From Octopus bimaculoides (lineage: Eukaryota): DNA of 64,000 bases. The notes below the pieces were generated by a model. The model saw only the letters and a program-made list of their open reading frames with translations. It did no database searches and was not told the DNA's origin. The translations under genes and the position numbers were made by a program. Each line of letters starts with the position of its first letter. Position 1 is the stretch's first letter. Below are positions 19,289 to 63,318 of the stretch, piece by piece. The DNA is taken from contig NC_069005.1 of the NCBI RefSeq assembly GCF_001194135.2, positions 34,642,504 to 34,706,503 on the forward strand, read 5' to 3'.

Positions 19289-19872
19289 GCGTGTGTATTT
19301 TGGAGTATAGTTGAAGGTGGAGGATGAATGGACATGTATGCGCTTATGCATACATTTATCTGTAGGCTCAACCGCTTAAGCTTGCAATTACTCTGTCATA
19401 TGTTCATGGGGACGATTATTATATTCTATGACGTCCTTACAATTAACAACTTTAACAACAGTGAGAACTATACCAGGTGGTACTAAGTTTAACAGATCAT
19501 GGAACGAAGTACACGGCGGCGCGATGGGGTTTCAGATACATAACACACACATACATATATATACGTGGCTGTGGTAAGAAGCTTGCTTACCAACCACATG
19601 CTTCCGGTGCAGTCCCACTGCGTGGCACCTTGGGCTAGTGTCTTCTACTATAGCCTCGGGCCGACCAAAGCCTTGCGAGTGGATTTGGTAGACGGAAACT
19701 GAAAAGAAGCCCGTCGTATATTACGTCCCCGTAACTTAGCGGCTTGGGAAAAGCGACCAATAAAATAAGTACTAGGCTTACAAAGAATAAGTCATGGGGT
19801 CGATTTGCTCGACTGGAGGCGGTGCTCCAGCATAACCACAGTCAAATGAGTGAAACAAGTAAAAAATAAATA

Positions 19873-22267: not shown

Positions 22268-22990
22268 TGTGTTTATATTTTAGAATCAGTGAAATTCGAT
22301 ACCCAAACATGACTAAACTCCGTATTTTAAGAATGAACAAATCATATGAAGGCGAGTATGTTTGTTCGAGTGAGTATTCCAGAATATCCAGAAGTATATT
22401 TATCCATGTCAGCGGTAAGTCACTCGTAATAACCATAATTACTATTGTTATTAAGGCGGCGAGCTGACAGAATCGTTATCACAACGGGCAAAATGCTTTG
22501 CGGTATTTCGCCCGTCGCTACGTTCTGAGTTCAAATTTCGCCGAGGTCAACTTTACTCTATGTCTATTTAGATAAATTCCTATACTAAAAGTAAATTTAT
22601 TACCATTCACACACATATATACACACATATATATGTATATTTGGTCGCCTATTAGGCGATAGATACACAGTTCGAATGGGAGTCAGTGAAAGTATTTCTG
22701 TGTTTTATCCGAAATAGATATTCATAAAGTCTAATGTTTATTTTGTTTTTACAGAATCTTCCATAACAACAGAGCATCGAACTGGACCAACTTCACCATC
22801 AACTGGAACTGTAATGACAGAGACTACGTCATTCGACGAAATTTCCTCCTCAGATGAAAAACTAACTACATTCCCAACCACTTCTGGGGGTACTACTATC
22901 ACATCACAATGTAAAACATTTTGGCCACATGTCACACTTTTGTATACTATTCTCACACTATATTTCATAAATTGCGAACATTTCACGTAA
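18435..22990 (+). CDS. Single-Ig-domain cell-surface protein, 195 aa, 4 coding exons (18435-18474, 20147-20327, 22284-22414, 22755-22990): signal peptide, Ig domain, Ser/Thr stalk, hydrophobic C-terminus (putative GPI signal)
   Basis: Phases 1/2/1 join cleanly with gtaagt donors and polypyrimidine-AG acceptors. Protein: MDYGLSNLLYWIILLSVIKCEA...IVVRC...VTWKR...LRI...YEGEYVC...SSITTEHRTGPTSPST...FWPHVTLLYTILTLYFINCEHFT*. Ig C-W-YxC pattern and four NxS/T sequons. A splice acceptor at 18372 upstream of the ATG implies an unlocated 5'UTR exon. Confidence 0.8.
19565..19865 (+). mobile_element. CORE-type SINE (family B) with 3' tail segment
   Basis: GTGGCTGTGGTAAGAAGCTTGCT..GTGGCACCTTGGGC..GGAAACTGAAAAGAAGCCCGTCG..CAGTCAAATGAGTGAAACAAGTAAAA. 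Confidence 0.85.
19945..20125 (+). mobile_element. Penelope-like terminal repeat carrying a hammerhead-like motif; second copy ~22005-22190, partial reverse copy ~2676-2745
   Basis: Shared CTG(T)xGAAGAGCGTA(G)GCTCGAA...AAAGACTTT...CCCGAGCGTCAAACTAATACA. Confidence 0.6.
20830..21350 (-). mobile_element. Highly degenerate LINE ORF fragment (R4/Dong-like)
   Basis: Broken peptides NKLVANPSAVYQRMKR and FLSKFWTAK...ETFTKAVAKVH resemble the pre-RT region of RLE LINEs. Confidence 0.35.
22453..22558 (+). mobile_element. Family A SINE, 5' part
   Basis: AAGGCGGCGAGCTGACAGAATCG..GTTCTGAGTTCAAATT. Confidence 0.75.
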
Positions 22991-23916: not shown

Positions 23917-24460
23917 TTACGTTCTGAGTTCAAATTCCGCCGAGGTCGATTTTGCCTTTCATGCTTTCAGGGTCGGTAAATTAAGTACCAGTTGCGTACT
24001 GGGTCAATCTAATCGACTGCCCCCGCTCCCAAAAATTTCTGGCCTTATGCCTAGAGTAGAAAAGAATATACACGTGGCTGTATGGTAAGAAGCTTGCTTC
24101 CCAACCACAAGGTTCCGGGTTCAGTTCCACTGCGTAGCACCTTGGTCAAGTGTCTTCCACTATATACTTAGGCCGACCAAAGCCTTGTGAGTGGATTCGG
24201 TAGACGGAAACTGAAAGAAGCCTGTCGTATGTATGTGTGTGAGTGTGTGTATCTTTGTGTCTGTGTTTGTCCTCCACTACCACTTGACAACCGGTGTTAG
24301 TGTGTTTACGTCCCCGTAATTATCAGTTCGGCAAAAGAAACCGATAGAATAAGTATCAGGCTTTGAAAAATATACTGGGGTCGTTTTGTTCGACTAAAAG
24401 ACCTTTCAAGGCAGTGCATCAGCATGCCCGCAGTCAAATGACTGAAACAAGTAAAAGAAA
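23917..24460 (+). mobile_element. Adjacent SINEs: 5'-truncated family A (23917-24067) followed by family B with tail (24070-24460)
   Basis: Same diagnostic motifs as the other copies. Confidence 0.85.
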
Positions 24461-34490: not shown

Positions 34491-37400
34491 CTGGAAAGTA
34501 AAGAAAACATTGGATATAATGACAGAATTAAGAATCAAAAGACATCTTACCATAATACACCACACACACACCTTAAACAACATAACCAACACACACACAC
34601 ACACAGTGTTCCCACAATGCAACACTACACATCACCTTATGCAATATAACCCTATCCACAATGTAGCTGTGGTTTGAAGAAATACTTGTCAAGCTATACA
34701 CAATGCCTCCAAATCTAGACACACACACACATACACATGCACAATGTAGGAGGCACTTGCATATGTGCTTAGGAAATCTGAGTTATTTCAATGAATATAT
34801 GTTTAAATGATTGGTTTTAAAATAAATTTATGTTCATTCAATCCTTTAATAGATTCAGGATTTGAAAATAAAGTGCACTCACCAAAGTCACAAGAACGGT
34901 GGAATCCCTGAACACAGTGCGGATGAGGTCCTGAATGGTTTCCTCCATCAAGGCATCATCGTTGGTGTGTTCCTGCTCCACTATAACTATTTTACTGTCT
35001 CTCATATAAGCTCGAGCAAAACAGAAAAGCTATAAAAAAAAAAACAAGGATTACATATATTTAAGTCACCCGTATAATGAGGAATCAAACACAATGACTG
35101 TACAAGGTTGGTTTTGAACATGCGATCTTGTGGTCAATTATTTAATCTAACACCTTCATGTAATAAACATTGGCTAAAGGAACTGAACAATTAAAACATC
35201 TGAAAATCTCACCTGTCTCTGTCCAATAGTAAATTCCTTGCCTTCATGGAGGACAACAGTTTCTGTGGAGAGAAATATCACTGGTAAAAATAACCATATA
35301 AACGATAATTTCAACTGTTTGGGGTAACACAAATTACAAGCTACATCTGACAGTGTTTAGGGTAACACAGTTTAGAGGCTGGAGATAAGTGTTTGAGATA
35401 ACACAGATTATGCTGTAAGCTAGAATAAAGGTTGACCTGGGGCTAAACAACAACAGCAGATGTAAGCTTCCCTGTCTACCTTTGGCTTAATGTCCAAATT
35501 AATGAGATTCCTCTGAGTAACGAACTGCTGACTGAGACAAGTAACAGGAAACCCTCCAGACTGTGTTACATTCAATCAGCATATTTAAGTGTCAAAGTAG
35601 TTTAAAATGTCTTCTCAGAGAGCTTAAGCAAGTTAATCAGCTGTTGAAAGTACATGTAAGATCAGTTTGGAGTTTACCTATGAAGGTCAGTTTGACATTA
35701 TATATAACAAAAGGAAGGTGTGTGTGATCAGCATTATTGAAGAGTCAAGCAAAGGCAATCCTAAAAATACAACATCTCTATCAACATACCCAGTTTATGG
35801 GGAAGCTCTTGAACTGTGCTTTTCATTTGAACTGCATTCAAAGCTTCCCAAATCTCTGGATCTTTATATATGCCTTCTGGATCAAGATTGAACCTGAAAA
35901 ACAAAACATTTCTGGCATCAGCATTAACTAACTCTCTTTATGTTTGCTTGGTTTTAGTTTAATACAGGTTCACTTGATATACAAATTCATAGATTTACAC
36001 AAGTTGTTCAAACAGATATTTTAATAAAATTTGATAATGCTTGTTGAGTTTGGAATAATCTAGATTTGAAATGATGAATGAGAAACTCACCTGACTGTTC
36101 CGTCAAACATGATTGGGTCGTGGGGTACAATGGAAAGACGAGATCTCAGAACTTGGGACGGCACAACTGATATGTCCTGATAGTTTATCAAGATCTTTCC
36201 TTCATGTACATGGATCATCTTGAATAAGGATAAGATGAGAGATGATCGCCCACTCCCAGCATGTCCACAGAAGGCCACCTTGAAATATAGAAAAAACAAC
36301 AAACTGCTGTGTAACTGGCAGCAACAGAAGGAATACAAACAACCACTGTCACCCTGACTAACCACCTCTAGACTAATCATCATCACAACATTAACATTAC
36401 TAAATATAACCATCAGCATCTTCAGCATCACTCCACCTTTACATAACATACACAAACAAACAAAAGAGCTGCTGTGTGGTCACGTGACCAGCTTGGTAGG
36501 GTAATGTCACATGATCATGTGACTGACCAGATTATCAAATGTTGTTATACATCACTGGTCACAATGCACTTTGCACTTTGTTTTAGCTTTCGAATTATGC
36601 CACCCTGCTTGCTAGGTGAATGGGCCAACATTCCTCGTGATCGGAAGGCTCGTCCATCATGGGGTTATTCATTTACTGTTGTATAGACTAGAGCAATATG
36701 AAATGAAGTGTTCCCAATCCGGGAATCGAACCCACTATCTAGCAATTGTAAGTGCAACACCCTAACCACTGGGTCACACACCCTCACAGATATGGTCATA
36801 TAATCTTCTTGAAATGACACATTACCATCAAGACATACATTGTTTCTGAAAAGAAAAGACAGATGGTTGCAGGTGGAATGTTTTTGATCAAAAGTATGTT
36901 TGACCAGGAATATATATATATATATCATATCCCACAATATTACCAAACAAAGCTTTAAGCTATCCACCATCTTTATAGTAAGTCCTTCTCTACCAGTTTT
37001 TGCTAGATGTATGGAAAGGGATCACTCCCAAAAATATGATCAGTTATTACCACAGTGTAAGTCTGCAATTAACCACCTCTACCATTACCATCACAAACAA
37101 CAAGATTTGTTACCTTTTCCGCATCTTTTATAGTAAAAGTGGCATCCATAACGACGGGGCTCTGTTCAGGATCATAGTTTAAGGCAATGTGTTGAAATTC
37201 AATGTCACCAACATCTGGCCAAGACTCAGGGACCTCAATGCAATCTGTAATATAAAGACAAAAGCAAAATAACATTTTAGAATGAAGGCAAGAATGAAGA
37301 ACTGTAATTTTAAAAAAATACATAATTACTCTATTTGTTTGGCTAAATATAGTTAAAATAGCATTTCTACTTTACAAACAATAATTTAGGGAGAGAAAAT

Positions 37401-40400: not shown

Positions 40401-43400
40401 GTAAAATTTGAAGAGCAGATAAAAGAGTATTATTATAGGAACAGTGGCCAGTACAAAATAGGGCATGGCTATAGAACAGATGACCAACACTATGATTGCT
40501 TGTAGTAAGAACCTCAACAATAACTCTATGGTTGTTGGTAGGATCTGAAATAAACAGGATAGAAGTGGATATAAAATGGTATGTAAAAGTACAAAATTAT
40601 GGTGGTGCTCTAGCATGACCACAGCTACATGGCTGAAATGATTAAAAGCATATGTGTGTGTGTGAGTATACAATCAGTGTACTGAAAAGATGCTCTTGAT
40701 CAAGCACAAACAGGACATCTACTCCTTCAGTCCAGGGCAAAACTCTGAGTAGACTCAATTTTGATATAATGAACACGCAGACATACACAAAGAGAGACAT
40801 ATCAATGCAGTATTCTATGGCCAGATTCCCTTCCTGATGCCAGTTGTTACTTATATCCCAATAAATAAGTTACTTATTCCACTGGAATCTGAATGGATGG
40901 ATGAATACAAAAATCTCTCAAGTGCTTTGCGGTCAATGCCTATAGAGAGAAGCAAATGTTCATTTTCTTCATTTTGCATCCATTTTGCTGTAGTGGACAG
41001 GTTGGAGAGGTAATGTCATTTTTGACCACAGTATTTTATTATAACCAGATGATCTTCATTGCTTACCATTTTTTGTTTTACAGATAAGAAAGTTTTCATT
41101 CCATTATTTCAAGAGCACAGTTATTGCATGAAATATTCACCAGAAACGTAAGTACATAAACAACATATTTTTTTACCCACGCAATCTCAAGCAGAAATGA
41201 CAACTTTCTGCTGTACGCGTGCATACATACAGATGTAAACATAATCACAAACACATATTACCCAGTGCCTCTGCATATCTTGTGAGAAAATGGATCTATA
41301 ACTAGAATGACCCTTTCCAAGGTGCAGACGTAGATAAGGTTCGGAACACCAACCGCTTCCCATGGCACCAATGCTGAGGGAGAGAGAGAAGTGAGTGGAG
41401 GCATGCTCAGCTGACCAACACCACAGACACTCAAAACATTGAACTTACCTGGTCAACAATACGACTGTCGGCTGAGAATGTATTGAGAATAGTGGCAGGT
41501 GGTGTTGACTCAAAGTGACTGAAACAGAAAATAAAACAGTCAAGCACTCACTTATTGAATGTTGTAGTTAACAGGTAACATCAATCAGTTCTGGTCAAGA
41601 TACACTTAGCACATGCTACAAGCCTTAGTTTATACTTTTAAGACATGGATTTCCCCCTGGCCTACTTAATATCCAAACATACATACAGTAGGCATATAGG
41701 CCCATAACATATACTTGTCAAACCTTCACTCACCAACACACCACAATCACACGGATACACTATATCCTCTCGCTGCCTTTTATACTGCAACTACAACAGC
41801 TCCTGCTCACAGGAACTAAAAAGCTATCTATCAAAACTGTTTCACTTACATCACAGGTAAACTGGTCAAATAGTGAAGCATCTTCTGATGAAGTCGGTCA
41901 GCTCCTCTCACTGTAGTGAACTTTAGTAATAGACCAGTCAACACTGTGACTGCCACACAGCTTAAACAGATGACCATATATAAACCAATATAGTAGGTGT
42001 GGTTGACAGGTGTGAGCTGCAGACAGAGAAGAAAACAAAGGATCAACATTGTTACATTTTATGTGTGATTAGACTGTAGAAGATTGTCACCAGAAATCAA
42101 ATTTATATTTAGTGTGAAAGGGATAGACCCAAGAAGTGGGATGAAGTGGTGTGAAAGGCTCTTGAGACACTGGGCCTCACTGAGGAAATGACATGGGACC
42201 AGGAGTTGAGGTGATTTGCTGAACTTGAGAAGATGTGTCCAGTTAAGAAGAATCATGGTCATCCATACATACAGGCATGTCTTTTGCAAGTGCCAGTGCC
42301 ACATGATGTACACATGATTGAAAGGTGAAAAGAGAAAAACAAAAAAACCACCTACCTTTGGACTGGTGATGGAATTATTCTGATGTATTTCATAATGCAC
42401 AGAGTGTTTTGAGTACATCCAGTTAGCAAGCCAAAGATCAGAGGTGACGATTAAAGTGTGTTTGCACAAAAGGAGTATCACCAATAATAGAACCAGTGAA
42501 GAGGAGCAGAGTTTCAGGAATTCAAAACACATGCCAGTGGAGATTGAACCAAGGTCACGCAGATCCAGTTTTAATGATGGACTTTCTTCTTCTTCATTGT
42601 CCTCTATCAGATAACAAACAGACATCATCATCATCATATACACACACACACACATTACATAAATAGCTTTTTTTTTAGTAATACTTACTTTTACTTTTCC
42701 ATTACATGCAAACCATGTGTGTATGTATACACATACATACATACATACATGCATAAACAAACAGACTATCTACACACATGTGTACACAAATTATGAGTTA
42801 ACCTTCAATATTATATCAATATCAAAATTAATTCCAGAAAATACTTTTCCAAAATATTTAGAGAGAAAGAAAGAAACATTAAAGATTACAGAGAAATCTT
42901 AGAGATATTCTGTAAAAGAATTGCAGATTGAGAGAAATGAATCCACACAGATTCTCCTTTGTAACACAGCAGCAATGGTGGATTTATTATCACCTTCGCC
43001 TTAGCGAAGGCAGATGTATTGTTTGCAGTCGCATTTGTTTGTTTGTCTGTGGACAAAATATCTCAAGAACCACTGGATGGAATCGGATGAAATTTTCAGG
43101 GATGTTTGGCCTTGGGATTGGCATGAACTGATTAGATCTTGGGATCAATCCGGTACCGGACAAGGATTCTGGATTATTTTACCACTTTTTTTACTTAATT
43201 TTTGAGAGCAGCTGCATTCATTTTTAGTATTCCCGTTTGTGAGAGCAGTGAAGTTTATTTCAGATATTCTTATTTTAAAAATCATCTCCGGCTAATTGTT
43301 GAGAGGACATTGGTGTTGCCTTGGCGGGGATTTGCGCTCTCTAAGTGCTCTTGTTAATTTTGATTTGTAATTAATAAGTTGTCAGAACAGATCCATTACA

Positions 43401-46400
43401 TTCTTTAAAATGAAATCATTTAGGATTCATCTTCTTAAGTTGCTACTTTGGTCAGGTGCATGTCTCAGGTAAACAATTGATAAAGAACAGGTGGAAGAGT
43501 AGAACTAAGGAGAAACGGGTTTCCTGACTCTGTAACCGCAACTACAACCACATGCTGGGCAAAATGCTTAGCAGCATTCCATCCGTCTTTACATTCCAAG
43601 TTCAAATTCTGGCAAAGCCAACTTTGCCTTTCGTCCTTTCAGGGTCAATAAAGTAAGTACCAGCTGAGTACTGGAGGGGGGGGGGGTCAATGTAATCAAC
43701 TTACCCACTTCTCTGAAATTACTGTGTGTGTGTGTGTGTGTGTGTGTAAAATCTACAGCTCTGAATCAACTGTCAACCTTCTCCTTATATTCAGACCAGC
43801 TCAATCTTCACTCTTGCACATTGCATCTGATTCCTCTGAGACAAGTTCTTTTTTTTTTTCCCTTCGGTTCAGTTGTATTATTTAAACACTGGGAAAAAGA
43901 CATCTCTTCCGACCAGAAATGTAATGTTTCTTTCCAGACAGACAAGTTTGTCAACTCTACTAGTGTCCATAAGAGAGGGACAACTAAAGAGCGTTAATAT
44001 TCTGAAAGAGAATAAATAGCACGTGTGTGTGTGTGTGATATGCATTAATGTGGCAGAAAAGAAGAAGGTGCATTAGTTTTGCATAAGTGTTTAAGCAGAG
44101 ATTTAACATGTGGTATACAATACAGGACGGTGCATCACTTGCAACTCTTCTACAGTGTACTACATGAAAAATACTACATATTTATATTGACTACCAGTAA
44201 TAGTAGTGATAGTAGCAGTGGTAACAATAGCGAGGAGGGGAGGGTAGGAGGAGCCAGTGCAGAATACTTTACGTTCATAACATGTCTCCTTTGTGTAGTC
44301 ATCAAGGGGAAGTAAATCATCTGAAAAAAGGTGACAGTTTAGAAGTGATACAGTCCAACCGTTCGGTAGTAAATACGGGCATTAACTTACCTCATAACAA
44401 GATTCCATTTACAGAATTAACTGTTTCTGCTAAACAATTCTGGTTCTGGTCACCCCTCTCCCCTCTTTAAAAATGCTCACTATATACATAATATATACAC
44501 ACAACATTATTTATATACATAATATATACACACAATATTATTTATATATATATATAAACTAGCAGTCCATCAGTTAGGACAATGAGTGTTCCAGTGGATC
44601 CAATCAACAGAGCAGCCTGCTAATGAAATTAACATGCAAATGGCTGAGTGCTCCACAGACACACATACCCTCAATTCTCTCAAAAATATAAATGAACTTT
44701 AAATAACTGCCATGACACTGACAACAATGCTGTAATTGTTACACAATAAATACTTTAAAAACGAAACTCTAGCTTTCTCGTCACTGTAGCAAAGAAGGAA
44801 CTGCTGACAGGTGGACGGTCAGCTTTCTCGTTCTGACTAAGTCCTTGGAAATTGGTTTATTGTATAAAAGAGTCGACAAAGACATGGGTGCATGCATAAA
44901 GGCATTCATTATGCTTGCACAAAACACATGCAAACACAGGGAAACATTCACAGATGATGATTGTGTTCATGCAAATATAGAAACCAGAAATAAACATGCA
45001 TGTGGACCCATACACACAGACACAGAACACAGGTATATACAAATCTACATACAGCCATACAAACAAACATACAAGCATACAGCTGAAATTGCTAAAAAAA
45101 ATATTTAGCGTTTCTACATCAGACTTAAAACATTAAACTGTTTTCTGCAGAAAATACATGAAAATCAAATAAAATCATATTCTAAAAATATATAGTCTCC
45201 ATGAAGTGTGCGTGTGGTGTATGGCAGTACCATATTTCTTCAAATAGGTAACAGTAAAGAGTAAAAACTCCCACCTCCTTTAGTCATGAATGACCATGGA
45301 ATGGCACCTAGAAAGTTCCCCTCCAAGGCACAAGTCCAAGCAAGGTTGTTTCTGGAAGACCAGCAGTAGCCCATGCATACCAACCCACCCTCTCCACACC
45401 ACCAATGTTATCCAAGGGAATGACAAAGAGCGATACAGCTTGGCACCAGTGATATCGCATCGCATTTTTACAGCTGAGTGAACTGGAGCAAAGTGAAATA
45501 AAGTGTCTTGCTCAAGAGTACAATATACAACCCGGTCTAGGAATTGAACTCACTACCTCATGATTGTGAGCCTGACACTCTAACCACTGAGCCATGTGTC
45601 TTCAAATACAGGTAGAATATATCACAAGTTTTTTTACCCAGGTGGGCGATGGAGCATTTTTTGGCCAATAGGTAGGCAATATTGCAATTTGGCACAAAAG
45701 GTTTAAGAAACACTGCTTTAGGGTCTGGAACTGTAAAATAATTCAGATCACATCTAGCACACACACACACACACATTATATATTCAAGATGTTGTTAGTG
45801 TAGGGTGTTCCAGACAACATTAGTGACTCCGTCTACAGATGTGTCACACCAACTCAGCGATGAAACATCTATGTGGCCACTCAACTACCTGGAAGCAGGA
45901 GCCAAATCTCCCTCAGATCACAGTCAACTATCTTGAAACACATTAGATGTTGTAGTGCCAAGATACATTGTGGCTGAATAAAAGACAAAACGGTCACAGT
46001 TAGATCACATTTTTGTATCATTTGTTGGATTAAGGGGTGGGATTAGTGGGGGATAAACAGCACTCACATTATACTACATCCTACCATCATAACACCACAA
46101 CCAGATATACACACACATATAATTGTGACTTTAATGTTAGACAAGATACTTACCTTCTTCCAATCCATCATCCTCAAGACTATTTTCTGTCATTACAGAC
46201 ATCTGTGATACCTGACGACTAATTGGTATCCCAAGGTTTGACTGAAACACAAATATATATACCAGTAATATACAGGGGTTTAAACACACAACACACAGGA
46301 AATTCATTTGCAAGTTCAGTGAACCTACGACTAAAGATGACCTTAAATGTGTCCTTTTTTTAATATTATAAAATGTTAAGGAAGACTTAGCTACTATTTC

Positions 46401-48839
46401 TTGCAGATTGAGCAACTATATAGAGACTCCACATTAACTCATGCCTTTAAAAGTAAATGTGAATCCACTCAGAGAAGGCTCAGCACACTTCTCACCTGTA
46501 GCCACTGCTGTCCCTTTTCATAGCTTTCTTCATGTCAATATATATGAACACACACACAAAATGATTGGAGACAACATACCTGTATAGACAGCTTGTGTAC
46601 TGGTTCAGAGATATGGTCAAAACTAGTTCGCCGGTGCTTGTCAAACTCATGGTCAATATCCTGCCTGGAAGTTAACAAAAATACCACACCAATAAAATAT
46701 AAACTACACCTTGCATATATAAATAAATAATAAATGCGTTCTACTCTCTGTTTCGATGTTGGCCATACTGTCTTCCAAATGTATTACATTGTCCCCTAAG
46801 GTATCTCTTTGTAGATCTAAACCCATTCAGCATGTCAGAAATCAACTCTTCAGCATTTAAACTGACCCAAATATTCTTCCTGTTTTATGGTCAAACTGGC
46901 CAGATCCAGTCTCTCTCACCTACCCTACAATGCTAGTTCTAAAAAATATTCAATCACACAATTGAAATCTCAAAGTTACAAGATAATGCTGGATAAATTC
47001 AAAAACATGTGGATAAATAAATGTTACATTTGATAGAATAATCTGAATGCTATATGGTTTTAAAAGGGCAGCATCTTATTTGGAAACTGTTTTAAACTTA
47101 GATCTTTAGAATACAAGGTGACCACACTAAGCAATGATGTGGATAAATACAAACTTGCTACAAGATTAAAATATGCTTGAGGCACATTCAAATCCATAAT
47201 AAAGATGACTCACTGTGTTTTGTCACGGAGAAAATTTCTTGTCAACAGCAAGAAAATATAGTGAATGGCATTCTTACAGGTTTATTAAATATACTCCAAA
47301 CAATTTAAACTGATAACGAGTTTAGATCTTTGATACTTCAGAGAGATTACATAGGAAATGAGTTGAAGTGTACATGTGTGTGTGCGCACGAGTTTAAATT
47401 TTAGATCAACATAGAGGATAGTCACCCGAAACAATCATTGTTTGCCCTGGAACAGTTTCAAAGTTTCAGCCTAGGGTTCACACAAATGTTCTACAATAAC
47501 AGTCTCAATGTACAACAATGATTGAGGGACAGACTCACACTGTACTTACGACACTGTATAGGCCATAGTAATACTGTACGTTCAAAGGACACAACATGCA
47601 ATTAAAGATCACACAAGTTTGGTATGAAAATATTTTGAAGAAGATGGGGTGAAGGTAGAATAATAGAAAATAACTGTGATAAGGAATAAGAAGAAGAAAA
47701 AAAGAAAGAAATAGAGTAAAGTATTGTGATTACAAAAATAACAACAACAACAGCTGAAATATTGACTAGATGGTCATGTGACTACTTAATTCATTAGGCA
47801 TATAGAACAAAATGGTTTGGCGAGAAAGCATTATAGAATTGTTTATGAGGGGGAAATAAGAGGGTCATCTCGTTGGCTTTGCCATCCATTGCACACCCAT
47901 ACAACCTTTAAATTTTAAGGTCTTGCACATTTTTATTGTCCCCCAATACTGTGATTATCTCAGGTTTATGAATTATCAACAATCGAACTTCAGCCATTCA
48001 TTCATCCAAATGTTTTGGTTATAATCCCTATCACATTAATAAATGGATAGAAAGTAGGACTTTGGGTGGGGTGGGGGACTAAGGGATTTGCACACTCTTC
48101 ATGTATGGCTCATGTCATCTCTTTGTTGTAGTTTTCTTACTGTGTTGATGCCGTGTGTGTGGATTTGAGTTAGCAGTTATTTTGTAATTAGCTATAAATA
48201 TTTCCAGTTGTTGCTGTTGTGTTTGTTGTTAGTAAAAAAACACAACATTGAAGAAACAGAGAAGAAAAGTAACAACAGCACGTACAATACAATAATAAAA
48301 AAAAAAAATAAAACAATAATAATAATCCTTTCTGAAATTTGGTGGGGAGTAGGTAAATCAGGTACATTGATCCCAGTACTCAACTGGTACTTATTTTATT
48401 GACACCCAAAAGGATGAAAGGCAAAGTCGACCTAGGCAGAATTTGAACTCAGAACATTAAAGTCAGACGAAATACCGTTAAGTATTTTGCCCAGCATGCT
48501 AACAACTCTACCGGCTCACTGCCTTAACAATAATAAGAATAATAATAATAATAAAAAAAATAATAGTGGTAAGAACCTGGTCAGAAAGAACACAAAAGTA
48601 CATATATACATATATATATATACATATATACATACATATATATATATATATATAAGAATAAGAAAGCATTCACAGAAGTAATACCTCTCAGCCAAACTGG
48701 ATCTCCTGAAATCAAAGAATCAACAGATTAAATATTCCCCAACAGAACTTGACCAACATTCTTCAGAATAAAGTTGCACAACAGAATAAATAAGGATATA
48801 TGTATGTTTGTATGTATATATGTAAGATAGATAGATATG

Positions 48840-48905
<66 letters not shown>

Positions 48906-51872
48906 TGAAAATAGTTTCATTCACTGAAAGTTCTGGCCTTCCCTGTTGTTATTGAGTCTCTTGTTACTGTTTTGTTATTTAAAACAACTTCAAGAACCTC
49001 AGAGAAACAAGAAATCTTGAGTAGCAACAGGATGGAGTTCAAGATCCAAATGAATTGCTTAAACTTTATGCTTACTAAATACTTTTCTCTCTTCTTTGTA
49101 CACCCATACATATAACAAAGTGTGTGTGTGTATCTTATATGTCACTGGTCTCTTCATGTGTAAAGAAGATGTCCATTTATAGCTCTTCAGCCTTTTAAAA
49201 TGGTTCTTCTCAATTTTGTAAAGTAGGGACAGCGAGCACCCACTCACTCCCATCTTCTGCCTCTCACTGGGATATGAGAATGAATACACAGCTACTCACA
49301 TTGAAAGGTACACATACATACTCCCTACCAAACCAACTACAATAACTCTTTCCTAGGCATTACAACCAAAAAAAAAAGAGAAAAAGAAAAAAGAAAAAAA
49401 CAATGGAACAAGTTCCCCTGAGAAACAAAGACAAACTTTTCAGAATTCAATGCCACAATTAGTATCTGTTATGACTGTACATAGATTTACCAAAACAATT
49501 ATAGATGCAGCTAAAAATATATTCATTAAGGCAATACAAGACATACAACTCTGATTACAAGACTGAAACCGTCAAACTGATAATGAACGGAGACAACCCC
49601 AGACACTAAAACCAGAAATGTAGATATATATATATATATATATATAAATTTAAATACTAAGGGTGAAAAATTGAGTATTAATTTAATTAATATCAATTTA
49701 AAACCAGTGGCCTAGCATATTGAAAAATCTGAAGATTCAGAAAAATTATATTACATACATATACGAGGGATGACCACTAAGTGGACATCCATTATGCTAG
49801 AAGACCACCTATGGTCTGACCATTAAGAAGAGATTGTTCTCAAGAAAAAGTATAGTTCCAAAGTTACCAATCACATGCAGCAGGTAACACTCTTGTTTTG
49901 CTGTGTTATGAAAGAGACATCAATAGATTAATCAAAGTGTGATTACATTAGTTTCTAAAATATCTGTGAAAACTGAAACTTCAATGAATCAACAAAAGAA
50001 GGAAATGACACAATATTTGTATTGACTAATGAGTGATGGATGAATATGACAAAAGAGTGAATATTGAAGATAACAGATGCTTTGGGTGAGGTGTAAAAGT
50101 GATATATGAGAGTGGACACCTCAACAAAGAGTTACAACCCCAGGCCATTTCAGTTTTTCAGTTTATATCATACTAAACATAAGTAGACAAAAAGCATGCC
50201 CTACTGCCCCTCAGGTCACCCAATACATGCACTGCACAGTCCAGAGTATTGAGCAGCATTTATAACAAAAAATGCAAGACAGAAGTAAAACCCAGTGACT
50301 TAGATATACTCAGGTTGTGTGAGAGAGAGAGAGAGAGATCGGTTCATGAGAGAAAGAAAGAAATGTGAATACCTGGTTGGTATGTGAGAGAGAAAGAATG
50401 AGTGAAACAGGACATACTAATGACCAAAATTCCAGAAAAGATAATAGAAACAGGAAACAGAAAAATACCTTTCTGGAAGACTTGATCTCCTCCTGGGGCA
50501 ACAAAATAAAAACAATAGCTTCATTACTGATATTTAACATGTTGTAACATGCTATTTAAGGTGATTAGAATAAATCATAGCTACATGTGATATGTTGTAA
50601 TAGACTCTTAAGTTTTTCATTATTTATTCTTGTACAAGTACTTAGACCAGATCCTCAGTTTCAACAACCGACACAACAACCACATTAGTGTAGGAAGACC
50701 TTCAAAGTCATAGCTGAGAATGACAGATCATAACATACATTGAGAGGTCATAGCAAGCGAAGCGATAAGATGTATTGACAAGGCACGGAAGACCACGACA
50801 GGTTACAACAGATCACAGGCAGTCATTGCAAACTAAAGAGATGTTGAGAGGTCATGGCACACAATGAGAAGTGACAGCAGGTCATCAGAGGTGATGACAG
50901 GCCATAGCAGACCACTGCAGGTCATAAAAGATGAAACTGACCCGGAAATAGTTAGAAGGTACTCCTCATTTGATTCCTATGCTGCAAAACCATAGACGTA
51001 GAGAGAGAGAGTATTTCACAACATGACATATAAGAGTACCTCAGTACCCAATATACAGAGAGTACCTAAAAAAGAAAAAAAGGATCAAGTGTCGTTCCTG
51101 AGCCATAAGCTCAAGGCCAGTTTCCCAGAATCTGTGGTGTATACACCCACCCTAGATGGGACACCAGCCCACTTTAGGATTGCTCACTTTTGCCAAATGA
51201 GGGGACTGGAACAACATGAAATGAAATGTTTTTGCTTGCCCAGTCCAGAAATTGAAACCACAATCTTATAATCATGAGTGTAACACCCTAACCACTAAGC
51301 CATGCACCACCACAGAGAGTACCCAAGTACATGACATAGAAAGAACCTCAGTAGACAATAAATAGAGGATTCCACAACAACAAAGATGGTACCTCACTAC
51401 AAAACAGGCAGAACCTTACAAAAGGATACAGAGTTCTTCATTACACAACACAAAGTAAAATTGACAACAAGATATAGGGTACGTCACTACAAGACATACA
51501 AGCAGCACTACATGGTACAGAGTACCTCAAGACAGACAGTATAGTACCTCACTGCAAGATATAGAGTACCATGCCAAAAAAAAAACCTGATGATAGTTCA
51601 TTATAAGGCATGCAGTACCACATAATAAAACATACAAAGTACCTTATTATGAAATTTAGAGTACTGCAAGGAAGACATGACTTTATTACAAGACATATGG
51701 AACCATGCTATCAGACAGTCATGCAGTACTGCACAAGACAGAGACAAACTACTCTTGCTACTACTAATAACACTACTGATCAATACTTACTGATACTTTT
51801 GAAAAAATATCAATATGTATTGAGTACTTCACTACAAGATCTTGTTCTGAAATATATAAAACCAAGCTGTAT

Positions 51873-51903
<31 letters not shown>

Positions 51904-52591
51904 TATTTTGCAACATCCAGCTCACATACATACACATGCACACACAATACTCTACAGATACTGACAATATTTTACTACATCACATACATACACACACTCA
52001 CAGTATACAGCTACAGGACAAGGACATGACCACATGACATCAATATATAAAAATCTATCAAAAAATACCTTTCAACCACATTAGTTCTTCTGGAAATAAA
52101 ATTGATATAATAATGGAAGTTAGAAGATAAAGTAAAACTGATTAATTATTATAATTTATGTGTTCTTGACAATGATGATGATGATGTCGATAATTATTTA
52201 GGATTTAGGCCATCAATTACAAGGAGAGGGATGGTCAATTCCATCAATGAAGGGATTAAGCAATTATATCAACCCCATTTCTTCACTAGGACTTTATTTT
52301 ATTGGCTCCCAAAAGAATGAAAGACAAAATCAACCTCAGTGGAATTTGAACTTACATTGTACAGAACCAGAACGAATATCACACAGTAGTTTCTTTTTTC
52401 TCACAGTCTAACAATGCTGCCACTCCACTACTATCACTACCGACATTGACCCCAGTATGCGACTGGTACCTTATTTTATTGTCTGCAGAAGGATGGACGA
52501 CAAGGCAGACTTTGGCAGGATTCAAGCTCAGAACACAAAATGTCGGATTAAATGCCACTAAGCCTGTTGTACTAACAACAATTCTACCACC

Positions 52592-52628
<37 letters not shown>

Positions 52629-53941
52629 TCTACTAAAGGCACAAGGTGTAACTGGTACTTATTTCATCGACCCCCAAAAGGATAAAAAGCAAAGTCAACC
52701 TCAGTGGAATCTGAACTCAGAACATAAAGATGGACTAACCACATGGTTCCGGCATGGTACCTAGGCCAAGTGTCTTCTACTATAGTCTTGGGCTGACCAA
52801 AACCATATGAGTGGATTTGATAGACAGAAACTGAAAGAAGCCCATTTATATATATATATATGTATGTATGTATTTGTGTATCTGTGCTTGTTCTCCCACC
52901 ATTGCTTGACAGCCAATGTGTTACATTCCCGTAACTTAGCGGTTCAGCAAAATAAACCGATAGAATAAATACTAGGCTTACAAAGAATAAGTCCTGGGGT
53001 TGATTTGTTCGACTAGAGGCGGTGCTCCAGCATGGCCGCAGTCAAATGACTGAAACAAGTAAAAGAATATATACATTATTCAGACAACATAAATACCAGA
53101 AAATATTTGACTCCAATACAGATTTCTGGCAGCCATCTCGACGAGTTCAAATATAGACAGAAGGCCATGAAGTTGGGGAGAGGGCTAGCATTTACTTTAT
53201 ATACCCTGAACAAATATTAAAGATGTGCATCGCATAATTAATATAATGGCTGTAAATGGGATTAGTGAATGTCAAAGTAGAAGACACACCAAACAGAGTA
53301 AGGGAGACTACTCGATATTGATGAAGGGAGGTAACTTGGTCTAAACAGACGTAAGTGGTCTATGTGTGACAGGGGCGGCTAATGTTGGCTAACTATACGG
53401 GGAACGAAGGAGGGTTAACACTATGTGAGGCTTCTCGGGAGACTTGTAATAATATGTGGGAGAGGGATAACATATTGTGGGTTAACACTTCATTCAAACA
53501 TTATATGGTTTGACCAACTCCTCCATTTATGTGAAGTTAATAAAACACTTAATGATTTCATGGGTTAACCCCACATCAATTATCTGGGTTAACATGACAT
53601 TCAATTATTTTAGCTTCTACAACAATAAAATAGGTTAATATCAAACACGTAATGGTTGTTACAATACAAAAAAATCAAGTGGGATAACATAAAATGTAGG
53701 CATGACGAGAATAATCTAACCCAGATGTGGAGTGTAAAGGGGCTAACACTTACTTGTTATCCTTCAGTACCCTTCTCCAGCTTTCATAGAGATCAGGGTC
53801 AGCACGCTTTATGTCCTTCAATCTTCCCTGACATTTGATTTGGTGACGATTCACAACAATTATCTGCAGAGAAACAAAACATGTATTACTATTGTGTGGG
53901 GGGAGGGGGGTTTAGAAATTACTATCGTGTGTAAATATATG

Positions 53942-53978
<37 letters not shown>

Positions 53979-56900
53979 GACACAAATTACAGAAATATTT
54001 AGATGACATTATATATTAAAGAAAATTCTAATTTCACGACAAATTGTTTCGTAACTTAAAAACATGTAAATAATTTATATCATATTTAATATTTAATAAT
54101 AAATAAGTTACACCCAAACAAATACCCACACACATTTATACAACATGGTAACATCAACAAAAATAATGTAAAACAATGTCTGTGAAAGGAACTGACCTGA
54201 TAAGCATTGTAGATGTGAGGAATTTGTGGAGAGACAAGGATAACTGTACGTTTTCTTCTGATCATGCTGCGTACCACTGCCTCCTCAAAAACATTGCGTC
54301 CAAGGTGAGGCTCTATCTTGGAGAATGGATCATCCTGGGAACAAAACATGTTTAAAGTTCAAATCTTGTTTGAAACAACTTTTCTTTATTTCCACCCTTG
54401 GGAAAATGAAACTGACTTAGGCCTACAATGTGTTTTTTTTTTTAATATTTAAGTTAAAGGAGGGGATAGGCAGTATCCATGACCCTTTTTAGAGCTTTCA
54501 TGACCAGTTGGATGGGGGAGAGGGCTTAACCTTCAGACCAGACATTTTGTTAGAATGCTTACAACAAAGATGACACCTGTAAAGAACAGCCAAGGACCAG
54601 GTGCTGGGGTTAAACTTGCAGATGGATTGATGATGATGATGATGTGAGTTGTTAAGTTCAACTCAATCTTTAACCCCCTAAACTAGAAATGGTAGCAGCC
54701 AGTAAATGGAATAACTGGAAGAGTCCATGTAAAGAAGGTGGGTAGATTATGCTTACCATAATAATTGTGTTTGCTGAGGAATAGAGGGCTCTCGCAAGAG
54801 AGATACGCTGTTTCTGACCCTCTGTCAGTAAGATACCCTGAAAATAGAGACAAAGTCAAAAGTAGTAATTAGAATGGTGATGCTGTTGTTGTTTGGTTGG
54901 TTGAGCCAGTTCATACTTCTCACTTGCATCATCTTTATCTTCTGATAATATCTTTTGTGCCGTAAACCATTTACTATCAAAGGAAGGAAGGGTACCCCCT
55001 TCTTTCCCTTAATGTCCTAAACACGTGCTTATTTTGCTTAATGGATAATCTAGCGCTGGTGGAGACCCATTTTCTACTCTCGACAGACCAAATTATTCTA
55101 TGGTAGCATCTCTTCATTGGCTGAACACTCAAAGTACAGCTCTAAATATAACGATAATGAGAGGATTGACTCGTTAACCTACCTGTTCACCAACTTCTGT
55201 CCGATCTTTGGCCGGCCACAAAGTCAGGTCCGTGTTCAGAGAAACAGCATGGAGTACTTTTTTATATCTGTAATAAGTAACAAATACTTTATAGAGACAC
55301 ACACACAGATACCACCCAATACATTATGTACACACACCACCACTGCCACTGCCACCCAATTCGGTCCTCAATTCCTTATGGTTATCCATAGTACTTAATA
55401 ATGAAGGTCTTCTCCATCATTTACGGTTTCTTTGATGAACATACATCCCAAACTGTTGTTTAATTTCATATTCTCCAAAGTTGATGTACCAATCTTGTCT
55501 CTTTCAGCAGCAGGAAAACACAAATGCCAATCACAGCAAGGAAACAGCACTGCAGCACACACACACACACACACACAGAGTTTCATAAAACATATTCAAG
55601 AAACACTTACTTTCTATAATTGTATGGTTGACCAAAAAGTATGTTTTCTTGGACTGTGGCATTCATGAGCCAAGGTGGTTGCGAACAATATGCCAATGTA
55701 CAGGCTCTGTAAGGAAACAGATTAATCGATCAGTTATAATAACAACTAAGAATGATATTAGTGAAAGAGGTTGTTGTGTTAACTTTACTGTTAGTGACTA
55801 CGAATGGATAGCAAATTGTTGCAATAAAACTGTAAGATGAAGATGATGATGAAAACATATATACACACAGAGACAGAGAAACATACCTGTTCCACTCCAT
55901 GACTCCAGAATCCAAGACCATTTCCCCCAACATGGCTGATAACAATGTTGATTTGCCTGACCCAGAGGGACCAGTTATTATTGTCATCTTACCTACAGAA
56001 TAGAACAACAACAGTAGTAGTAGTAGCAGCAGCAGCATGTGGTGGTGCCTACAGTAGTGATGGCACCAGAGACTACCAAATATCTCCAACATCACCATCT
56101 GTGTCCAAGTGAAGCAATATCATTCACATCCTTCACCACCCGTCCCCCATGCAAACCCTCAAATATTCTTAAAAGGTTAACCTTTCACATCACTAACCCA
56201 TGCATTCTCCTCTCCAAATTAGAGAGAGAAAGAGAAAGATAAAAGGCAGAAATACTAGGAGTTATATACATAACTTTCAAAGGCGTGGCTGTATGGTAAG
56301 TAGTTTGCTTCCCAACCACATGGTTCCAGGTTCAATCCCACTGCGTGACACCTTGTCATGCATATCTACGTGTGTATACCTTTGTGTCTGTGTTTGTGGG
56401 CCCCCACAGAAACATAGCATAACTGAGATGAAGGCCCTGTTGGTCATTTGGCCTGAATGCTATGCGACGACTGCCCAAACCGAGCTAACCTGGACCAACA
56501 CAACCACCACCATTACTACACTTTGCTGCCAAAAGTGATGACGAAGAAGAAATTTTGCAATAATATAAAAAATATGAGGGACGAACTTCTAGAAACTAAG
56601 ATGCAGTTAGAGGTGAGGAGAGTAGAGATGCTGAAAGAACTTACCCAGGGGGATTTTAATGTTGATATCTTTCAAACAGGAAGATTCATCGGAGAGGTCC
56701 GTAGAGAAAGAAGCCTCGGAGATGTCAAGGGCAAGCCGGTGTTCCACGGTCGGAGCGGCTTCTGCTGCTTCTCCCTCATCTTCCATGATAGAGACGTTGC
56801 CGTTGGTATTTCGTCGACGATAATGAAACCCTCGTCTTTCGGCGATGTAGGTGTCGTTTTCAGAAGTGATTGAGTGCTGTGAAAAGCTCGGCCGACGAAA

Positions 56901-58375
56901 GGCAGGGTCAAGGATGTCCAGCACAGATGCCCCGCTGTTCTGCCGGCTGTGGTTTGGAGTGTGACCCAGGGGGGGACTACTCTCCACTGATGAGATACTT
57001 CCACGCATCGCTCCATTGTGGAACGCCATGCTAAGCTGGTTGGTTTTTACATCATACTTCATCAGAGTGTCCAGCTTGTTCTAACAACAACAACAACATC
57101 AGTAAGAGTGACATCACAACACACACACACACACACACACACACCACAAAGAAGAAAGTGAAGGAGACGAAATAGGAGATCTCGAAACGTTTATAAAGAG
57201 TAGCAGCAAGAGGAAATGTAAAAGTTGAGGGTGTACAAAGAGTAGCAGTAAGAGGAGATATTATAATTGAAGGTGTACAGGAGGATTAGTTGAGGGTGTA
57301 AAAAGAGTAACAGTTGAGGGTGTAGAAAGAGTAGCAGTAAGAGGAAACATGACAACTGAAGGTGTACAGAAAGTAGAAATAACAGAATATGTAAGAGTTG
57401 AAGGTGTACAAAAAGTAGCAGTAAGAGGAGATGTAACAGTTAAAGGTGTAGAGAGAGTAGCAGTAAGAGGAGATGTAACAGCTGAAGGTGTACAAAAAGT
57501 AGCAGTAAGAGATATGTTATAATTGAAGGTGTAGAGAGAGCAGCAGTAAGAGATCTGTCTGGAAGAGTGGCAGTGATGTTTTTCCAAACTTACTAACATG
57601 GGTGGAATTGATTTTGAAAATTCAGACATTTCTGCATCACTGGATCTTGAGTCCATCACCAGCAGAGTAGGAGTGGAACCTGTTGTCAGCCATGTGGACT
57701 AATTTGGTTTACAGAGGAGAAAATATCTGTAGCCCCCCTACACTACCAACTCCTGCAGAATAATGTGCCGTGCAGCCCACCTACATTGTAGGACCATAGT
57801 GTACCATGTGGTCCACATACAATAGGACATAGTGTACCATATGGTCTACAAAGAGGTGCTAAAACGCTCCTGGCTTTAAGGGCATCGTGAAAGGCCTGGT
57901 TAAAAGCCCAATCTTCCGACTTCTTTTACAGGGCTTAGAAAGACTAAAGGACTGCTGTAATAAGTATGAGAATCTGAGAGGGGAATACGCTGAATAAAAT
58001 TATAATTAACTGATCCTCCTGCATTTTCTTTTACCCAATAGGTACAGTAGGATGTACTGTATGACGTGGTTGAACTATCATAGAACAGACTGTACCATGT
58101 GGACCACCAGCACACCACAGTCCACCACGTGGTCCATTTTACTAGAGGACATTGGGTACAATATCCTCCTTATAAACAGAAGATTGAGTAAACAGAAAAC
58201 TAAATATATTTCACAGCAGCAGTCAGGGAACCATGAGTGTGTAAAGCACAGGCAGCAGGATTATAATAGCATGAAACTATTGGTAGCTCTTTCGGTGGTG
58301 TATTTAAATTCATATTTATCTCTCACTGGAGGGAGTACTTTTTTTCTTGACCTTACCTCTATCGGATCTGTAAAC

Positions 58376-61400: not shown

Positions 61401-63318
61401 TTTTAAGCTTAGTACTTATTCTATTAGTCACTTTTGCAAGCACACCAACACTGGTTGTCAAACAGTGATGGGAGAACAAACACACGCACACATGCACAAC
61501 AGGCTTCTTTCAGTTTCCATCTATCAAATCCACTCATAAGGCTTTGGTCAGCCTGACGCTATAGTAGAAGACATTTGCCCAAGGTGCCACACATTCGGAC
61601 TGAACCCAGAGCCATGTGGTTGGGAGGCAAGCTTCTTATCACACAGCCACTCCTGCGACTATGATAATACTGATAACTGTGGAAATAGAATTGGTGAGGC
61701 AACCGGAATATGGAACAGAAACTGGAGAAGCTACAGAAGTTTTGAACTAAAATTGGTGAGGCAACCGGAATATGGAACAGAAACTGGAGAAGCTACAGAA
61801 GTTTTGAACNNNNNNNNNNGAATTGGTGAGGCAACCGGAATATGGAACAGAAACTGGAGAAGCTACAGAAGTTTTGAACTAAAATTGGTGAGGCTACAAC
61901 ATGTGACTTGTCTGTGGATATTTACAACAGGTGGTTGGTCTCCACAGCCTCACCTGTTGATTAGTGTCAGTCATAATTAAATTATTCCATTTATGACATT
62001 CAACAACTGGATCCAATGGGCAAAACTCATAGGTTCTGGTCTAAAGATGAAAACTGCCATTCTTTTAACTGGTACTTGTGATCAGTAAAACACATCTGTG
62101 GTGGCTCCACATTGGTTTGGTGTCTATGGAACGGTGAACTTAAAACCTTGCAGAATAAAAGGTTCTGTTGACAAAAACAATATTTTAATTGCAAACTCAT
62201 GCCAGACAAATACTTTGGTTGAATGTCAGGATGACTTACCTGAAGAGGTATTGCCCAGAAATAGTGCAAAAAACTGTAAATGATCATAAGGTTGTTACAT
62301 TCTATTGTCACATGATTCATTATTTCAGTTTCTGTAATTCTTCCATGGGACAAAGCTTGAGTTGATAACTGTTGCACCTTGCTGTATATCATCACCTGTA
62401 AAAGACGGGGTGTAAAGGTGAGAACAACCAATCAACTGATATTTTATTGATCACATGTTAGTGTGTGATATATACAGACTCAGTTGATTACTTAATCAAT
62501 AATCAATGACAATTAAGGAAATAAGCAAGAATATTAGTGACATAAATATGTTGAAAATGGTTGCAAGTGGGAATTAAATTAATCCTAGACTTATCCTCTC
62601 TTCAGGAATTCCTCTCTATGTCAGTGTGTGTGTGTGAAAAATATTCAGACAGTGTATATTCAAAAGAAAACTAGGTTCGGTTTACCAGCTGATTGGAAAT
62701 GAGCAACTCTAAGAACAGGAAATGGGAGCCTTTCAGTTATAATGTGTGTGTGTGTGTGTGTGTGATATTACACACACACACAAGATGTAAGAGAAGATGG
62801 ACGCAATAATAGGTGAGGACTTACCTGTATAGCAGCTTTCATCCTCATCCCTTCTCGGATGAGTATAAAAAAATGGTACTCCATGAGAGAGTACTGCAAT
62901 AACATGAGTACAAACACTAAAGTGATGAGGATGTAGCCATTGGAGAAGAACTCAGTGACAGACACATTTAAGTTGTCCTGCAAAAGAGAGAGATAATGGT
63001 TATGGTGTACATGTTGTACTGGGGGGTAGGCATGGTGCACGTGGTACTGAGTAGGGGGAATGGGGGCACTATGGAAGAGGGGGCATGATATATGTTGTAA
63101 TATGTAGTGGTGGCCATGGTACATGTGATTCTTTCAGCTTATCATACATGTAGTATTATGGAATTATGAGTGTGACATGTGATGTATATGTGGAGAGGAG
63201 GTAGAAGTGGGGGCTTTATGGGTGGAAGGCATGTGGTGGTGAAGGTTGTAGTTCTGTGAGAAAGACAGTGGATATGAAGGTGGTGGGGTTGCTGTTATGC
63301 AAACAATGTGGGGAGAAG

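Follow-up and report, generated by a model that had tools for sequence, protein, structure and literature searches.

A SUR-like gene of the ABCC family in Octopus bimaculoides appears to carry a small array of tandemly duplicated microexons, which encode kinase-site motifs at the very start of the linker between its first nucleotide-binding domain (NBD1) and its second transmembrane domain (TMD2). The gene occupies the minus strand of the 64,000-nucleotide stretch analysed here (the window; NCBI RefSeq assembly GCF_001194135.2, contig NC_069005.1, positions 34,642,504 to 34,706,503), and all coordinates below are window positions, on the minus strand for every feature of this gene. We read two segments in the intron that follows NBD1, E1 and E2, and probably a third, E0, as genuine translated microexons that would have arisen by ancient tandem duplication and that would tune a regulatory linker, and we put the probability of this reading at about 0.6. 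A preliminary description of the same DNA had proposed E1, E2 and a further segment, E3, as three microexons of a linker resembling the R domain of CFTR.

Two probable RRSSL microexons and their candidate relatives in one intron

E1 (50469..50492) is 24 nt long and reads cag/GAGGAGATCAAGTCTTCCAGAAAG/gtattttt (slashes mark exon boundaries), encoding (K)RRSSLPE(R). E2 (48685..48705) is 21 nt long and reads cag/GAGATCCAGTTTGGCTGAGAG/gtattact, encoding (K/R)RSSLAE(R). Together with E3, both have AG and GT flanks, symmetric phase 2 and open frames, and on re-reading, the coordinates, lengths, splice dinucleotides, phases and peptides that had been given for the three segments proved exact. They lie in an N-free intron of 7089 nt (53753-46665), which holds 183 segments of 9-33 nt that are bounded by AG and GT, in phase and free of stops; a lone candidate therefore proves little. 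With splice-score matrices derived from the same gene (23 donors, 21 acceptors), E1 ranks 2nd and E2 6th among these 183 decoys, and the acceptor score of E2 is in the 99th percentile among intronic AGs.

When E1 and E2 are aligned in the 21-nt register that they share, six of 18 codon nucleotides differ, and five of these differences are synonymous: four are at third codon positions and one is at a synonymous first position of Leu, with the sixth producing the single Pro/Ala exchange. About 4.2 synonymous sites carry the five changes, and the probability of at most one amino acid change given six random substitutions is 0.006-0.008. The flanks are not alignable (they score 25, the null being 16 ± 5). 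The synonymous differences, the unalignable flanks and the good splice signals together suggest that the duplication is old and that the peptide has been selected: E1 and E2 have the look of two copies of a single ancestral exon, of which the peptide and splice sites alone have been retained. A duplication under protein-level selection was also what the preliminary description had suggested, and the synonymous excess (p ~0.007) bears it out.

The pair was compared with chance by shuffling the intron. Of 3000 dinucleotide shuffles, none produced a donor-anchored similar pair in which both splice scores reached 5 or more and, judged by their sequence, E1 and E2 together exceed chance. Transposons are not modelled by such shuffles, and repeats were checked separately. 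The other similar decoy pair in the real intron, encoding NPLIW at 52830 and 51205, is inside an interspersed repeat. A repeat or transposon origin of E0, E1 and E2 was rejected: no repeat family covers them, there are no further copies in the 64 kb, and the similarity ends within 36-38 nt. The NPLIW repeat is a multi-copy element resembling a short interspersed nuclear element; its partial copies number about 15 over the window (48382-48460, 52285-52363, 52461-52539 and 52650-52728, and others, e.g. 24139-24363, 61502-61589 and 19620-19712), and it spawns look-alike pseudo-exon pairs.

The candidate E0 (52069..52089) had been overlooked. It is 21 nt long, reads ttatttccag/AAGAACTAATGTGGTTGAAAG/gtattttt and encodes K-RTNVVE-R, and its combined splice score is the highest among the 183 decoys. 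The E0 donor (AAAG/gtattttt) is identical to the E1 donor, while length, phase and first Arg codon are shared with E2; 14 of the 21 nt of E0 and E2 are identical, against 11 for the next-best 21-mer anchored by AG and GT. In blastn comparisons across the window, E2 is the best match of both E0 and E1, and the best match of E2 is E1, followed by E0. These matches span 36-38 nt, from acceptor to donor, and the three segments are spaced 1.6-1.8 kb apart. In the codon for the acceptor serine E0 has AAT (Asn) where E1 and E2 have AGT (Ser). On these likenesses we lean slightly towards E0 being a third paralogue of the E1/E2 family, one without the acceptor serine.

E3 (47550..47573; 24 nt, cag/TATTACTATGGCCTATACAGTGTC/gtaagt) encodes (S/N)ITMAYTV(S) and had been put forward, as SITMAYTVS, as the third microexon. 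Beyond its splice dinucleotides we found nothing to recommend it. It ranks 21st of 183 by splice score, with some 20 decoys equal or better; its donor (GTAAGT) is good and its acceptor mediocre, below the 75th percentile of intronic AGs. Neither the anchored 21-mer comparison nor blastn returned any similarity of E3 to other sequence in the window. A hemichordate linker (W-x-K-SIT-V-I...) was considered as support and set aside, as it aligns with the constitutive WRRVLKD and not with E3. From its signals E3 is very unlikely to be a genuine exon and is best treated as a decoy.

All 16 inclusion combinations of E0-E3 keep the reading frame open, and the full-inclusion reading of the segments first proposed is DNK-RRSSLPE-RRSSLAE-SITMAYTV-SQDIDHEFDKHRRTSF. 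E1 has tandem in-frame acceptors, CAG/GAG/GAG (ccccAG/GAG/GAG, 50484-50498); use of the later ones would give 21 or 18 nt and remove one or two Arg (KRRSSL, KRSSL, KSSL), and the first is by far the strongest (score 5.4 against -2.9). The junctions predicted for the mRNA are GAAGGATAACAA/GAGGAGATCAAG for NBD1/E1, CTTCCAGAAAG/GAGATCCAGTTT for E1/E2 and TTGGCTGAGAG/GCAGGATATTGA for E2/linker, with GATAACAA/GAGGAGATCAAG and CCAGAAAG/GAGATCCAG as further microexon-containing strings. E0 would add GAAGGATAACAA/AAGAACTAATGT (NBD1/E0) and GTGGTTGAAAG/GAGGAGATCAAG (E0/E1), E3 would add TTGGCTGAGAG/TATTACTATGGC (E2/E3) and TATACAGTGTC/GCAGGATATTGA (E3/linker), and skipping of all four would give GAAGGATAACAA/GCAGGATATTGA.

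The SUR-like gene and the sites in its linker

The window starts in the L0/TMD1 region of the gene (63982 downward), with TMD0 outside it and no gene for a Kir6-type partner in view. Among solved structures, the NBD1 block is best matched by SUR1/SUR2 (SUR1 1.6e-54 against CFTR 1e-51, with the MRPs close), and NBD2 by SUR2 (1.7e-67 against 6e-62 for ABCC5). For the linker and the start of TMD2, SUR scores 6e-7 and the next family among solved ABCC proteins, MRP1, 0.13. The margin of SUR over other proteins is small for both NBDs and clear for the linker and TMD2. Database relatives of NBD1 plus linker are distant ABCC proteins only, the top one being a hemichordate ABCC9-like protein at 44%. 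By these alignments the gene is a SUR-like (SUR/ABCC9-like) ABCC gene and not a CFTR-like one.

The last NBD1 exon (53754..53863) encodes IIVVNRHQIKCQGRLKDIKRADPDLYESWRRVLKDN-K and aligns to the C-terminal end of NBD1 in SUR1 and SUR2. It ends in phase 2 as AA/gtaagt, its 3' end at 53754 reading ...GATAACAA/gtaagt (codons AAG GAT AAC AA/). Constitutive linker exon 1 (46580..46664) starts at 46664 as ttccag/G CAG GAT ATT and encodes (K/R/S)QDIDHEFDKHRRTSFDHISEPVHKLSIQ, with RRTSF at 46633-46619; constitutive linker exon 2 (46154..46241) encodes SNLGIPISRQVSQMSVMTENSLEDDGLEE, in which an acidic run begins and a weak RxxS site is found. The next exon (42356..42603) continues this run with EDNEEEE and then enters TMD2 with CKHTLIVTSDLWLANW, aligning to SUR2 945-1015 and SUR1 963-1038 (E ~6e-7). 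The acidic run at the C-terminal end of the linker, LEDDGLEE-EDNEEEE, aligns to the region of SUR2 947-961, the ED domain. A scan of the two downstream linker introns for further RRxS microexons found none.

R-R-x-S-hydrophobic is the established consensus of PKA/PKG-type kinases (basophilic AGC kinases). The residue at the splice junctions is always Lys or Arg (AA/G, AG/G or AG/A), so E1 and E2 present [KR]-R-S-S-L-x-E in any context. S-x-x-E is a CK2-type motif, which the conserved Glu at +3 in E1 and E2 fits, and R-x-x-pS-x-P is the 14-3-3 mode I core, which the Pro at +2 in E1 fits. RRx[ST]-hydrophobic sites occur in E1 (RRSSL), E2 ([KR]RSSL), linker exon 1 (RRTSF, 46633) and an exon ahead of NBD1 (RRPSF, 56897); across the window this pattern has 17 matches in 128,000 six-frame codon positions. 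With E1 and E2 included, the linker would carry RRSSL twice, RRTSF and RQVS (site peptides DNKRRSSLPERRSSLAERQD and KHRRTSFDH), and the number of its [KR]Rx[ST]-hydrophobic sites ranges from one to three with the inclusion pattern. The PKA-type RRxS motifs that had been pointed out in E1 and E2 are present in both. By motif, E1 and E2 would be kinase substrates, the identity of the kinase not being readable from sequence.

R[RK]SS[LI] occurs in the NBD1-TMD2 linker of 2 of 82 ABCC homologues with a linker tail (P0007 and P0097). Their linkers read RKSSIAES (P0007) and RRRRSSLTRSSIKRNSIS (P0097), and both are unrelated ABCC fragments. The likeness of RRSSLAES-I to RKSSIAES-L of P0007 was considered as a sign of descent and is taken instead as a motif-level coincidence between paralogous ABCC branches. 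Clustered basophilic sites at the NBD1-TMD2 linker may be a recurrent, convergent feature of ABCC proteins.

NBD2 is degenerate relative to SUR2: the Walker A Lys is replaced by Arg, the Q-loop Gln by His, the Walker B Asp by Glu and the catalytic Glu by Gln. It reads GHAGSGRSS (36240-36266), IVPHDP (36114-36134) and IVIVEQEH (34955-34990) at the Walker A, Q-loop and Walker B motifs, where SUR2 has GRTGSGKSS, ILQDP and ILIMDEAT; the His of the H-loop is retained. NBD2 does not keep the Walker A Lys, the Walker B Asp or the catalytic Glu of a consensus nucleotide site. In NBD1, the signature is LTEGQ (54808-54828).

A large exon that runs into NBD1 (56645..57080) contains a Ser-rich insertion with RRPSF (56897-56883) and the sites RGSIS and SRQNSG, as well as YRRRN (56822-56808). 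This insertion may be a second R-like region, and YRRRN would fit an Arg-based endoplasmic reticulum (ER) retrieval motif; the RKR of SUR1 also falls between TMD1 and NBD1. On the plus strand, downstream of the SUR-like gene, open frames at 20191-20250 and 22345-22374 are immunoglobulin-like (…VNQTIVVRCQ… and …YEGEYVCSSE…), which suggests that another gene has exons there, on the strand opposite to the SUR-like gene. The window contains 4569 N, spread over numerous gaps with TA, TG or CA microsatellites beside them, which points to a draft assembly.

Proposed use of the microexons and rival explanations

The donors of E1 and E2 (AG/GTATT) have no G at +5, whereas such a G is present in 21 of the 23 constitutive donors. 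In a comparison by eye, the skip junction VLKDNK/QDIDHEFDK parallels SUR1 TLMNRQDQELEKE (MNRQDQELEKE, NK/QD corresponding to NRQD), and the microexon-free junction therefore looks ancestral. The microexons look like lineage-specific insertions, and the donors and the SUR1-like skip junction together suggest that their inclusion is probably regulated rather than constitutive. At 21, 24 and 21 nt and phase 2-2, E0, E1 and E2 fall within the 3-27 nt of frame-preserving microexons. SRRM/eMIC-type microexons are characterized by a UGC near the 3' splice site, a long AG-exclusion zone and a strong branch point (PMC8797185). E1 has UGC at -8 to -6. In E0 there is a CTAAC, and the zone free of AG extends over 48 nt; in E2 that zone extends over 42 nt, and neither E0 nor E2 has a UGC.

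Each microexon would add a module of seven to eight residues right where the NBD1-TMD2 linker begins, so that the linker, with RRTSF, would hold one to three basophilic sites, set by inclusion. Inclusion would alter the length of the linker and, once it is phosphorylated, its charge. In SUR2, the R helix of the linker inhibits activation from its place between the two NBDs, an effect that is lifted by a 6-residue insertion (PMC10276813); the ED domain of the same linker is a mobile autoinhibitory motif (PMC8694068). Because so short an insertion acts in SUR2, insertions of seven to eight residues are plausible as modulators. By analogy with vertebrate SUR2, whose linker wedges between or contacts the NBDs, the microexons would tune such inhibition. 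The equivalent linker of CFTR and Ycf1 is released by phosphorylation (PMC8694068, PMC10276813).

Several points weigh against E1, E2 and E0 being exons at all. They could be chance or relic pseudo-exons, with the mRNA always joining 53754 to 46664: the intron offers 183 decoys, shared short peptides are common in shuffles, and the skip form alone yields the vertebrate-like NK/QD. Besides the donors without +5 G, the splice scores lie below the constitutive range (9.5 and 9.2 combined for E1 and E2, against a constitutive mean of ~17). A pair equal in length and mismatched internally at no more than one position, sought with no splice criterion, turned up in 32 of 2000 dinucleotide-preserving shuffles of the intron, which leaves peptide similarity alone with p ~0.016. 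A 4-mer is shared between some candidate pair in 812 of 1000 shuffles, and the shared RSSL 4-mer was dropped as evidence for being too weak. R, S and L are all six-codon amino acids; the statistics of E1, E2 and E0 each depend on 18-21 nt; E0 has diverged at four of six residues, leaving selection on it without support; and the motifs do not name their kinase. Database searches gave no transcript, protein or cross-species match, and no database protein contains the microexons: a linker-only protein homology search, a contig search with the 151-residue exon open reading frame and two metagenome scans all returned no match. That empty result carries no weight, however, because the collections are without any cephalopod orthologue. 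The joint test (0 of 3000 shuffles), the synonymous excess (p ~0.007), splice ranks of 2 and 6 among 183 and reciprocal best matches within 64 kb argue that pseudo-exons are clearly improbable. If the exons are real, they might still be mutually exclusive, one per transcript (K-RTNVVE-R, K-RRSSLPE-R or K-RSSLAE-R), which would make splicing pick the type of module and not the number. E0, E1 (in its 21-nt register) and E2 lie next to one another as paralogues that agree in length and phase, and three tandem paralogues of 21, 24 and 21 nt spaced 1.6-1.8 kb apart are arranged as duplicated alternative exons commonly are; mutually exclusive exon clusters occur in arthropod ABCC (MRP) genes. However, because each length is divisible by three, the frame enforces nothing, the introns are too long for steric exclusion to apply, and no shared 7-9-mers above the null, as expected of selector or docking motifs, were found in the flanks. 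We regard mutual exclusivity as distinctly unlikely.

The exons could also be real and serve trafficking, as a phospho-controlled module for Arg-based ER/Golgi retrieval or for 14-3-3 binding. Joining E0 to E1 gives VERRRSSLPE, with an RRR, and E1 fits the 14-3-3 mode I core. There are precedents: the Kir6.2 subunit of KATP channels loses COPI and 14-3-3 when PKA phosphorylates it beside its Arg-based signal (PMC4004980), the spliced C1 cassette of GluN1 places RRR beside PKA/PKC serines (PMC4245912), and PKA sites of the CFTR R region bind 14-3-3 (PMC3302758). The RxR motif arises solely in the E0+E1 combination, though, and the site lies beside NBD1, in a linker that regulates NBD dimerisation. 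Position would favour gating, and trafficking, if rather unlikely, is a serious rival. The preliminary description went further, taking E1, E2 and E3 as cassettes through which graded phosphorylation had possibly replaced ATP hydrolysis as the activating switch. The loss from NBD2 of the Walker A Lys, Q-loop Gln, Walker B Asp and catalytic Glu, the NBD1 signature LTEGQ and the one to three linker sites that inclusion gives would fit such a model. However, E3 is without support, the linker is without homology to the R domain, and SUR signals through Mg-nucleotide binding and NBD dimerisation, and lost hydrolysis need not in itself mean a kinase switch; the model in full is highly improbable. 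Quite improbable, too, is a splicing-programmable dial in which the microexon array, with one to three kinase sites and RSSL against the non-phosphorylatable RTNV, would replace, in cephalopods, the nucleotide cycle in control of the associated channel or transporter. We therefore retain translated, duplicated microexons that would tune the linker as the preferred reading.

Relation to known ABCC linkers and spliced cassettes

The linker of SUR2 (ABCC9) is of the same family, is at the same position and likewise has an acidic run at its C-terminal end. In vertebrates the linker is shorter, and neither microexons nor clusters of RRxS sites have been described in it; the octopus-type gene also differs in its degenerate NBD2.

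The R domain of CFTR (ABCC7) resembles the octopus linker in lying between NBD1 and TMD2 and in carrying multiple R-R/K-x-S sites. The CFTR site just after NBD1, RRNSILTE, resembles RRSSLPE. The CFTR R domain is of great length and is not known to be built up from microexons. In CFTR, phosphorylation by PKA relieves inhibition of NBD dimerisation (PMC8694068). There is no detectable sequence homology between the two, and the present gene groups with SUR: a linker-only query of solved structures found SUR, MRP1 and Ycf1 and zero CFTR chains at E up to 10, on which ground the idea that the linker is homologous to that domain was rejected. The earlier comparison with CFTR thus holds for linker position and the clustering of RRxS sites and fails for sequence homology, and the SUR2 linker, through its R helix and its ED domain, offers the nearer parallel. 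The region would be R-domain-like in its working, and not an R domain by homology. In the R region of yeast Ycf1 and in other ABCC linkers, a phospho-regulated NBD1-TMD2 linker recurs; their sites are constitutive as far as known, and the likeness is one of motif and not of descent.

Short spliced cassettes with kinase sites have parallels in other families. The 24-nt exon of GABA-A gamma2L carries a PKC site. The C1 cassette of GluN1 (RRR-SS) is a small frame-preserving exon that adds a basic cluster and a serine to a regulatory segment in the cytoplasm (PMC4245912). Whereas C1 and gamma2L are single cassettes, two to three tandem paralogous microexons would be combinable here. Basophilic sites in ABCC linkers and short kinase-site cassettes are both already known; what seems unusual is that paralogous microexons in tandem would supply the sites, and would do so in a protein of the SUR type whose consensus ATP site is dead.

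Exons of 21-24 nt in 7-kb introns are routinely missed or over-called, and in this intron one proposed microexon was unsupported and one better candidate had escaped notice. Cephalopods are noted for RNA-level diversification of neural proteins. If our reading is true, phosphosite dosage would be encoded by duplicated microexons, and the phospho-regulated NBD1-TMD2 linker of CFTR and Ycf1 would extend to the SUR branch. It would also give a handle on the regulation of an invertebrate SUR-like protein whose consensus ATP site is dead.

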